From Convolutriloba macropyga (lineage: Eukaryota), in contig NC_134468.1 of the NCBI RefSeq assembly GCF_964194025.1, positions 42,346,001-42,410,000 of the forward strand: a stretch of DNA of 64,000 bases, written 5' to 3'. A program made the translations under genes and the position numbers. The first letter of the stretch is position 1, and every line of letters begins with the position of its first letter. The notes below the pieces were generated by a model that saw only the letters and a program-made list of their open reading frames with translations, was not told the DNA's origin and did no database searches. This document shows, piece by piece, positions 12,801 through 58,389 of the stretch.

Positions 12801-15800
12801 ATCGATGTTTCTTATGCACTCAGAGCTGATATTATAGCAAGTTTACCAGAGAGCGTATCTTTCATCTAATAATATCTAGGCGTATATGAATCGTGAAAAA
12901 CCCAAGTAAAATCACGATCAATATTTTTTTTCCTCCAGAAAAGAAATGCTTCTTCACCAATCAATTACTTTTAACAACTTGGAATTTATCATATGCCCTC
13001 AAAGCCACCGCCAGACAGGACATCGCAGTGAAGGGATGAAAGGTATTCAAAAAAAGTGGTTATATTCTTTTGAGAGCAATTATTGATCCAGTCTCCTTTT
13101 AGCTCAAATTTAAGAAATGCAAATTTCTAATGAATTCCACATTTTATAAAATTCATGCAAATACCGCCCAATATGCACCAGCTGTTGGGAATCATTTTTC
13201 TTGAAAAAAATATGCAAATACTCCAGATTATGTAATTTGGTATGATCTCACAATTGATGCGTTCTTTTTATCCGCAACAAAGCAGCACTGAATTTCCATA
13301 TGAAGTAAATAAAAAATTTTGCATTTTTCTTTAAATACTTTGAACTTTTCCTTTAAATTTAGCTTTGAACATTTTGTAATTGAACAACGTACATTTCATT
13401 ATTGAGCGGCATGAAGATTCATGCAATTATCGAACTCGTCGCTACTGAATTGTATTTTACGTTTTTACTCCACGCTGCAAGATTTTGCAGACAACCCCAG
13501 CAACCTTAATGACCGGTAAGAGACAAATATGAGCATCTTGTGAAGAATTCTGTCACATTATGACAACTCTAAATATAAACGATGACCTAAATAATTACAT
13601 CCTGAACATTTATATTAGAGCTAAGAGTACAGAGTTGAAAATATAAAAGAAACTGGCCTCATAAATTCCACGAACAATGTTGGAATCGAAAAATTGCTTT
13701 GTTTTTCGTCAACACAAGTGTTCATTTTTCTCTGATAGTACAACTAAACGGGGTATAGGGCAAACAGAATTAAACTAAAATGCTCATATACCCGGCAGGC
13801 AAAAGTAAAATTGCATTCTTTAATTAATTCTATCTAAGACTGTCAAGACAGCTGAGACCAACCAGGCACATAAGGATAACTATACATTGAAGTAAACAAA
13901 CAAACAACAACGTATACAGCGACACATAGACGGATGGATGATACTTTTTCTTTACTTGGTTCCGTTGAAATAAATTTTGTTCAAAATATGCTAACCTTAT
14001 TTCCCAAGGCCTGGCAGTAAACGCGTAGGGTTTTGAAGTCAACGCACCAACAGGGCATATATCTGCGAACAAATATTTTCACGTTCAAGCCAAATATACA
14101 TGGTTTTCCAAACCTGGTATTTTGACAATATTGGCATAATTTATTTACCGATTACGTTTCCGGACAGCTCTGATTGGAACATCTTCTCCACATAGGTGCC
14201 AATCTAGAACAAAATAAAAGGGTTCATATAATTTTGAAGAGGAAAAAAGCAACTGACATTTGGGCCTTATTATTTCATAACTTGGGCAACAAAGCCCTTG
14301 TTTAACTTTGATTTTTCTTTTCAGATCATTAGTATGAACTTAATCTTGAACTAGGTACGCAAAAAATCTTGTAATTTACATACAATACAAGAAAAGCGCC
14401 GTTCTTGCTTCAATCCAACAATATTGGCGCTTCAAACGAGATTAACCTGTTAGTGGATGAATTTGATTTGTGCAAACAGAGAAAAAGCTTTTATACATCC
14501 GGAAGTGACGTTCCGATTCACCCACAGGGAACCTCAACATACCATGTACAAAATTGCCCTCAAACACACAACTATATCCAACCACAAGCCCATTTTTAGG
14601 CCCAACAGTAAATGCATTCGGCAAACACATTCGATTTTACAAGCGCACCGTCTTATTACTCTACACTCGTGCAAAATCATTCAATTCATTTTTAGTTCGG
14701 ATAATTCTTCATAAATAGCCGTCAAACTGTGATTGAAAATTTATTTTTGTTCATTCTTTGTTCACATTAACTTATTTTGGGTGTACATTGTTCTTTAAAC
14801 AAAATCCTACGGAATAATTAGCAATAGAATGGTTTCAGTGTCTGCGTAAAGTTACACTGGCCGAAAAATATTTTAATTATTTATCCAAGAGCTATCAATT
14901 TAGTATAGTTCTGAAACTTAGATTATCTCGACAACTAAACAGCTTGGTGGTGTTTCCTCAGATATGAGTTTTACTAATGGCACCGACACCCACTTCGTTC
15001 ACTCAATATTCGATAACTGTACAGAGCAGCCTGCAGTTTATAGCCCGTCTCCATTTGCGGACAAGAGGCTGCGTTACATAGCAGCAACGGGAGTTACTGT
15101 CTTTAGCTGCACAGGTGTCTTGGTCAACTTCATATTCATCTACGCCATTACTAGAACTAAATATGTTCCCAGAATCACAAAGCACTTTCTAACATGTGTT
15201 GCTTTGGGAGACCTCGTAAGGTAAGTGAGTAAACATGCAAGTAAGACTATTGGAGCATAGCCGGCAGATTGTCGGAATAGCTGAGAAAGAATAGACTTGC
15301 GTGCCCTATGATAGAATAGAAACAGATACAGATATAAGTTCAAAAAGTTATCGACGCCGCTCAAAAAGCTATGTAAAAAATTAAACGATAAATTAATAAA
15401 GCTTGTTAAAATTCATTGTGCAGAAGCCTTTTCATTAGGGACCCTTATTACACATATAAGTTCATTTGACCTTAAACCAATTCAAAATAAACTTAAATTT
15501 TAAAGTGCAAAAGACATTTTATTGAGTGAGGTAAGTCACTTATGATCGAAATCTAATCACGCAAAAAACTTTTGCTAGAGTGAGTGAAAAATGACGTCAC
15601 GCGCACAAAAGCAGTTAGTGAGAGGAAGAAGTCATTCAGAAATTTTGACTTTTCAGCTTTGAGGTATGACGAAAAAAGAGCGTCAGACGACGAAACAAAA
15701 AACATAGAAGGACAAGTCCTGACGTACAATTCAAAGAATGTTCATTGACTAAACACAAAACTAGGCCTAGAACGGACAATGAGTGAATTGGGAGAGCCAT

Positions 15801-57469: not shown

Positions 57470-58389
57470 GCAAAATCTGGAAAATGCGCGTTGAAGAAGC
57501 AAAATATACACAGCAAACCAATGCAATAGCACAGCCGCATTGTTTGATAGTCAAATAGAACTTGTCCATTGCACGTGTTATAAGAGCGTAAATAATTGTA
57601 CCATTTCAGAATAGTGAAAAGTTGTGCCCAAAACTGCTCAATTTTGAGGAATTGATTGATTTTAGGCGACAAAAATGATTTAAAAAATAGATCAAGACAT
57701 GCTGCTTGGATGCTGATTGAACTAATTTTTTATAGAGAAAACAGAAACAAAGAAGTATGGAGCAGCCCAAATGTTCACAAGAAATCCTGTCATCTCCAGT
57801 TTAAATTTAGTTTCATAAAATTAACCAGCAAACAGTAGTTGTCAATAGACACCCAATTAGACTGGTGCTAAAACATAGCTGGAGGAAACGAGAGCGTTCT
57901 GCTAAAAATGAGCGAATTCGATCTAAATGATTGAATAGGTTTACAGAAAATAACAAACTACACTTCATATCTTGCAATAATTGCTCAAAACTTATTGAAG
58001 TACTCATATTAAATTTAACTACAACAGTAGGGAACCAGCTTTTCAGCACAAAATGGTAAGTTTCTGTATGGCAAAAAGCTGCAATAACAGCATCAAACAG
58101 TGTATTCTAATTTTTGTTTGAAAATAAACTTGTCAAGGCTGCTATGAGCTTTCTAAAGCAGGGCAAGTTATAACCACATTCGTACTATGAGCGCAGTTTC
58201 ATTCTATCAAATTCAAATGTTCCGGGTTTTTCAATCTTCTTGTCTTGCGTATCTGATCTTTTTAACTAAAGTTTTTTCCACTTTTCTACATTACTTGAGT
58301 TTTTGGAATTCCAGAACGGCGTGATCATTTAGGCTAAAAAAATCTATTTGCAAAATGAAACAATTTGATCAAAGTTGTAAAAAATGGGT

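Follow-up and report, generated by a model that had tools for sequence, protein, structure and literature searches.

The spliced leader (SL) system of Caenorhabditis elegans uses SL1 acceptors that are found a few nucleotides before the AUG, an SL RNA with an Sm site between its stem-loops, and SL1 genes arranged in tandem with those of 5S rRNA. Linkage of SL RNA and 5S rRNA genes is known from nematodes and from other trans-splicing lineages. A spliced leader has also been published for the acoel Symsagittifera roscoffensis, where 30.2% of the genes were scored as trans-spliced (Martinez et al., G3 2022/2023; PMC9911081). In the flatworms (Macrostomum lignano, Schistosoma) a leader of about 30-40 nt is found on a minority of the genes (~30%), with conserved genes enriched (PMC9911081). 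Here we describe the corresponding system in the acoel Convolutriloba macropyga, starting from a stretch of 64,000 nt (contig NC_134468.1 of assembly GCF_964194025.1, positions 42,346,001 to 42,410,000, forward strand), called the window below and numbered from its first letter. Five genes in the window, encoding a G protein-coupled receptor (GPCR)-like protein, NDUFS1, a tetraspanin, SF3B6 and a small GTPase termed IFT22-like, have an AG resembling a 3' splice site just ahead of the start codon. The genome almost certainly supports SL trans-splicing, and with a probability of roughly 0.7 the leader is joined at four of these genes, the AG of the tetraspanin gene being the exception; the assignment to these particular sites is drawn from the conservation of the acceptors and from the context of leader junctions elsewhere.

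The assembly txConMacr16.3 spans 1,175.98 Mb in 4,694 scaffolds, a poly(A) RNA-seq run (ERR13669978) accompanies it, and the genome note makes no mention of trans-splicing (PMC13650328). C. macropyga resembles S. roscoffensis in that both are acoels with an identical leader, an SL RNA having a donor and the canonical fold, and a large share of the genes affected (PMC9911081). The two belong to different genera, and while the S. roscoffensis leader was read from transcripts (PMC9911081), that of C. macropyga was read from SL RNA genes, from genomic retrocopies and from public transcript contigs of another species. The nematode SL1 system is similar when it comes to the linkage of SL RNA genes to 5S rRNA, but its 22-nt leader is unrelated and of independent origin, and a separate SL2 serves the operons; our search in C. 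macropyga covered one leader only. The flatworm leaders are of similar length and are likewise found on a minority of the genes (PMC9911081), but acoels and Platyhelminths are unrelated, and the leader sequences differ.

The Leader and its SL RNA Genes

When the published 32-mer of the S. roscoffensis leader was searched for with up to three mismatches, 2,612 matches were found in the C. macropyga genome, exact ones among them, while the reversed control gave none. A 46-nt probe reaching from the end of the leader through the GTAAGT donor and the intron to the Sm-like site gave 1,384 matches and again none for the control. The 5' exon of the SL RNA is a leader of 31 nt, with the GTAAGT donor directly after it. 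Nearly all of the 1,384 matches belong to tandem arrays on C9, one at 23.14-23.78 Mb and the other from 62.06 Mb onwards, with a spacing between units of 1.06-1.8 kb (L019-L022), and the two arrays differ at one base of the intron (GTAAGTATT vs GTAAGTATC). At all three array loci scanned, the same repeat unit also contains a gene for 5S rRNA, encoded by the opposite strand (109-120 bits).

The 114-nt SL RNA unit is predicted to fold so that the 3' half of the leader pairs with the intron, which places the donor in stem-loop I, while an unpaired UUUAUUUGAAU stretch separates this from a strong stem-loop II. The calculated energy of the fold is -36 kcal/mol (z = -4.5). The Sm-like site is a sequence-predicted, loose match to an Sm site (AUUUGA). 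A sequence-only reading of the window had proposed that this organism trans-splices, and that an SL RNA gene with an Sm site should be sought in its genome. Both points are borne out: the genome contains about 1,400 SL RNA genes with a donor and an Sm-like site, and in addition many leader copies fused to unrelated sequences. No leader copy is found within the window or in the fetched loci of related acoels.

SL RNA genes of another acoel were also encountered in environmental metagenomes (L089, L098, L106; JGI contigs Ga0126343 and Ga0316207). These have an identical leader and a different intron (GTAAGTATTCCAACCCTATTTTTAAG) that is still able to pair with the 3' half of the leader.

Leader Junctions in Genomic Copies and Transcripts

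Exact matches to the leader are also found outside the SL RNA genes. All 52 genomic copies that were sampled continue into sequence other than SL RNA. The continuations are of 40 different kinds, many of them resembling retrotransposon open reading frame (ORF) 1. These copies, in which the leader is fused to unrelated sequences, are retrocopies. An ATG is found at most 12 nt from the junction in 25 of the 40 continuations, compared to 17.5-19% in controls (p = 5.5e-9).

Several leader-headed copies (L001, L003 and L004 in the C. macropyga genome, and L093 in GCA_013332895.1) have the same 20 nt after the leader and then diverge completely. The common segment, AGATGAGCCAGCGAGGCATG, encodes MSQRGM, and in L093 it is preceded by tttcag. 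These copies look like the start of a retrotransposon ORF1 with alternative leader acceptors.

A scan of public JGI contigs with a 25-nt core of the leader gave 54 contigs, 40 of which have the leader at their start, followed by a long ORF (sets Ga0073937, Ga0073981 and Ga0073986). Their N-termini, read by eye, are those of host-type proteins such as RPL3, HSP60, ARF, RPSA, DnaJ and a proteasome ATPase. For the HSP60 contig the C. macropyga genome gives no nucleotide match, and the leader-bearing contigs must therefore come from another species; the 40 contigs are transcripts of an acoel that has an identical leader.

These transcripts display what real junctions look like. The main ATG follows the junction at a median distance of 14 nt, and at no more than 16 nt in 20 of 39 cases. 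Of the 40 junctions, 32 are followed by A, six by G and two by T, and none by C. AT is the commonest context (18/40), and AG/GA, where the slash marks the junction, is seen once in the 40. The RPL3 and proteasome ATPase transcripts, in which the leader ends 6 nt before the ATG, serve as positive controls. In the C. macropyga orthologues of these genes the ATG is preceded by tttttAG at 8 nt, tttcAG at 5 nt and cttttcAG at 6 nt. The signature thus marks, in C. macropyga, genes whose counterparts in a relative receive the leader.

Putative Leader Acceptors in the Window

All five acceptor-like AGs claimed by the sequence-only reading are present where it placed them, each preceded by eight pyrimidines in ten bases. 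The site of the GPCR-like gene (14950..14966, plus strand) reads gtttcctcAG/atATG, with the AG at 14960-61, a spacer of 2 nt and the ATG at 14964. In front of NDUFS1 on the minus strand there are two AGs. The proximal one (24102..24118) reads tttgttcAG/gATG, with the AG at 24107-06 and the ATG at 24104-02, and so has the context AG/GA; the distal one (24119..24131), gttttgatttcAG, has its AG at 24120-19, 14 nt before the ATG, and the junction AG/ATTATTTG. The tetraspanin site (24868..24898, plus strand) is gtttttaAG, with the AG at 24878-79 followed by C, a 16-nt spacer and the ATG at 24896. The last two sites are on the minus strand. That of SF3B6 (27801..27826), gtttttatttacAG, contains tttatttacAG with the AG at 27813-12, 8 nt from the ATG at 27803, and that of the IFT22-like gene (57467..57490) contains cattttccAG with the AG at 57478-77, 7 nt from the ATG at 57469. 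AG/AT is read at four sites: those of the GPCR-like gene, SF3B6 and the IFT22-like gene, and the distal AG of NDUFS1. DNA contigs (X1) agree with the assembly without differences over 23414-25347, which covers the NDUFS1/tetraspanin region, and over 27495-28122, which covers the SF3B6 site.

As a control for chance, every ATG of the window was scored on both strands for an AG at most 20 nt upstream with at least eight pyrimidines in the preceding ten bases. Such an AG was found at 158 of 1,951 ATGs (8.1%), and at 14% of those opening ORFs of at least 50 codons. Finding it at five of five genes has a p of about 3.5e-6 against the 8.1% background, and of 5e-5 against 14%. The signature across the five genes is therefore not due to chance, while any single one of the sites could still be.

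Loci syntenic with the window were reached in related acoels by way of ORF fragments from their ENA assemblies. The gene order is kept, with the IFT22-like gene, SF3B6 and NDUFS1 pointing one way and tetraspanin, located between the last two, pointing the other; in one relative the GPCR orthologue and the IFT22-like gene are found on one contig. In front of the IFT22-like gene a pyrimidine-rich AG is found 6-10 nt before the ATG in four of four acoel genomes, at 70-85% protein identity, and the sequence further upstream of the acceptor cannot be aligned between species. In L026-L028 and L030, representing three lineages, SF3B6 has its acceptor 7-11 nt ahead of the ATG, and its other upstream sequence is likewise unaligned. 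For the GPCR-like gene the nearest relative (L071) has ttatcttctAG, a 2-nt spacer and the ATG, and in the more distant orthologues an acceptor-like AG precedes the ATG by 14-34 nt.

When it comes to NDUFS1, the sequence-only reading had placed the acceptor at the proximal AG, 24107-06, and this does not hold up. That AG is absent from the relatives, and the conserved acceptor-like AG is the one 13 nt upstream, at 24120-19, whose context YYTTYAG/ATT..TTTG is kept in L026-L028 and L030. The distal AG is most likely the leader acceptor of this gene. In L030, from a distant relative, the stretch from the NDUFS1 acceptor to the main ATG holds a three-codon upstream ORF (ATG TTT ATG TGA; L030:16809-16826).

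The AG of tetraspanin, with A at -3 and C at +1, shows poor conservation. What it has in common with a near relative is the 9-mer TAAGCTTCA, which lacks the pyrimidine tract, and in L030 no trace of the site remains. A pyrimidine-tract acceptor, the absence of a conserved upstream donor and the context of real junctions are found together at the GPCR-like gene, the distal AG of NDUFS1, SF3B6 and the IFT22-like gene, and not at tetraspanin. The proposal that the leader is added at these AGs accordingly fares well for four genes, in the case of NDUFS1 at another AG than the one first named, and poorly for tetraspanin.

Proposed Mechanism and Alternative Explanations

In the mechanism favored here, SL RNA would be transcribed from the roughly 1,400 genes linked to 5S rRNA, with a 31-nt leader that is the same as in S. 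roscoffensis. Its 5' exon would pass by way of the GTAAGT donor to the acceptor of a pre-mRNA, and the sequence upstream of that acceptor would be discarded. The leader acceptors would be 14960-61 for the GPCR-like gene, 24120-19 and possibly also 24107-06 for NDUFS1, 27813-12 for SF3B6 and 57478-77 for the IFT22-like gene, giving mRNAs in which the start codon follows 2-14 nt behind the leader. Judged one by one from sequence, each of these four AGs is probably a leader acceptor, whereas the AG of tetraspanin is unlikely to be one.

Several observations weigh against leader addition at these genes. None of the five window genes is encoded by the 54 leader-bearing public contigs. Patterns representing the leader junctions expected for SF3B6, NDUFS1 and the IFT22-like gene had no match in the whole genome, that is, no leader-headed retrocopy was found, and BLAST of the genome with exon 1 of SF3B6 and of the IFT22-like gene retrieved the genes themselves and no retrocopies. 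The Sm-like site has just three U's ahead of the G. Only 30% of the S. roscoffensis genes were scored as trans-spliced, which makes the prior for any single gene modest. Finally, a conserved acceptor is equally expected of a cis-spliced intron in the 5' untranslated region (5'UTR). The AGs would then be acceptors of ordinary 5'UTR introns, joined to gene-specific non-coding first exons further upstream, with no leader involved. A conserved acceptor just ahead of the ATG fits this equally well, about 70% of the S. roscoffensis genes were not scored as trans-spliced (PMC9911081), and for NDUFS1 the sequence-only reading had pointed to a cis donor at 24687. This candidate, GATGAC/GTAAGT (24682..24693, minus strand), is indeed present in the window, 580 nt upstream of NDUFS1, but it is not conserved: the relatives keep the motif TGATGACG but have GACGCT at the position of the donor, also in the nearest relative, and hence no GT. 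In L030 the NDUFS1 acceptor is moreover just about 210 nt away from the tetraspanin ATG, and upstream of every acceptor the sequence cannot be aligned between species. The four sites with AG/AT have the commonest context of proven leader junctions, and the same signature is found at the C. macropyga orthologues of genes that are leader-spliced according to RNA. Cis-splicing of 5'UTR introns is therefore considered improbable as the general explanation.

A further possibility is that the motifs are not used at all, transcription starting near the ATG and the pyrimidine-rich AG being promoter or initiator sequence or a product of chance. Such a motif precedes 8-14% of the ATGs by chance, but it is found at five of five sites (p about 3.5e-6), and for four genes the AG is kept across three to four genomes while its flanks are not; for the window as a whole this explanation is very improbable. 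For tetraspanin alone it is the leading one. Here the conserved TAAGCTTCA lacks a pyrimidine tract, C at +1 is seen in none of the 40 real junctions, a conserved TCA just downstream resembles, by inspection, a candidate initiator, and the gene is placed head to head with NDUFS1. For the other four genes joining of the leader remains the preferred explanation.

The IFT22-like/SF3B6 Interval

If the leader is joined to SF3B6, this gene might also be the downstream member of an operon with the IFT22-like gene, where one pre-mRNA would be split by polyadenylation and leader trans-splicing. The pair shares one strand and keeps its order in all fetched related genomes that reach both genes, and the SF3B6 acceptor follows the stop codon of the IFT22-like gene after about 432 nt in L026 and about 419 nt in L030. 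In C. macropyga, on the other hand, the corresponding spacer (27814..56144, minus strand) is 28.3 kb long and consists partly of old dispersed repeats, so that the short intercistronic distance of an operon is not found. No AATAAA or ATTAAA is present in the intervals of the relatives, and some 420 nt leave enough room for a separate promoter. An operon of this kind is doubtful, and it is similarly unlikely that the pair represents an ancestral acoel operon whose genes were moved 28 kb apart by repeat insertions in C. macropyga while the SF3B6 acceptor was kept.

An old dispersed repeat family at 35000-46300, with at least ten copies in the genome at 66-70% identity, fills part of the spacer. 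The ORFs of the spacer have no Pfam domain.

Gene Models and Neighboring Features

The names given to the genes by the sequence-only reading hold for three of them: tetraspanin and NDUFS1 are supported by Pfam, and SF3B6 by named homologues. The tetraspanin coding sequence is a single exon of 308 amino acids (24896..25822, plus strand; PF00335, E 1.8e-22). An exact look-up found this protein not to be on record, and a search for homologues matched only the protein itself. The first coding exon of NDUFS1 runs from 24104 to 24044 on the minus strand, with the donor GT at 24043-42. SF3B6 (26600..27803, minus strand) comprises exon 1 (27803-27631) and exon 2 (26806-26600). The coding sequence of the fifth gene (56145..57469, minus strand) is divided among three exons, which span about 57469-57248, 57010-56834 and 56426-56145. 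Its stop codon is at 56147-45, and it encodes a Rab-like small GTPase according to Pfam and PDB searches. The exons gave weak Rab/Arl matches in PDB, with IFT22 itself at E = 0.4, and the name IFT22 is therefore left unconfirmed. The GPCR exon has no Pfam match and has clear orthologous ORFs in related acoels.

Searches with the exons of the IFT22-like gene and SF3B6 matched genomic ORFs of related acoels and no transcripts. A 288-nt contig from a 2016 poly(A) metatranscriptome (X5) matches 50 nt of SF3B6 exon 1 at 84%; it comes from a distant organism and was rejected as evidence. Exons of a zf-CCCH (ZC3H10-like) gene are found at 62018-63400 on the minus strand, upstream of the IFT22-like gene and in the same direction, an arrangement also seen in L029 and L030.

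The region between NDUFS1 and tetraspanin is as a whole too divergent for a usable alignment. Within it, the CRE/ATF-like motif TGATGACG (24680-24695, minus strand) is kept between the two divergent genes in two species, and in L026-L028 it is found 160 nt from the tetraspanin ATG. It is suspected to be a promoter element of this head-to-head pair, a candidate part of a bidirectional promoter, and the putative cis donor of NDUFS1 may belong to it.

Between the 3' ends of tetraspanin and SF3B6, at 25990-26400, a very high-copy repeat is found, with DNA contig depths of 1e5 to 8e5 vs about 40 elsewhere. The contig inserts carry GGGATTCGAACCC, which resembles the T-arm of a tRNA and suggests that the repeat is a tRNA-derived short interspersed element.

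Implications for Acoel Biology

If the IFT22-like gene and SF3B6 did once form an operon, C. macropyga would offer a natural case of an operon dissolving, or of tolerance for a very long intercistronic region, since with trans-splicing the downstream gene no longer depends on a fixed 5' end. For the annotation of the chromosome-scale C. macropyga genome, the findings mean that the 5' ends of genes should be set at leader acceptors, and a pyrimidine tract followed by AG/A, usually AG/AT, with an ATG within about 15 nt provides a predictive signature for these. SL trans-splicing is known acoel biology that is here extended to a second genus. What is added for trans-splicing in Xenacoelomorpha is small, namely that Symsagittifera and Convolutriloba have exactly the same leader and that about 1,400 SL RNA genes are linked to 5S rRNA, and the rest is expected biology.

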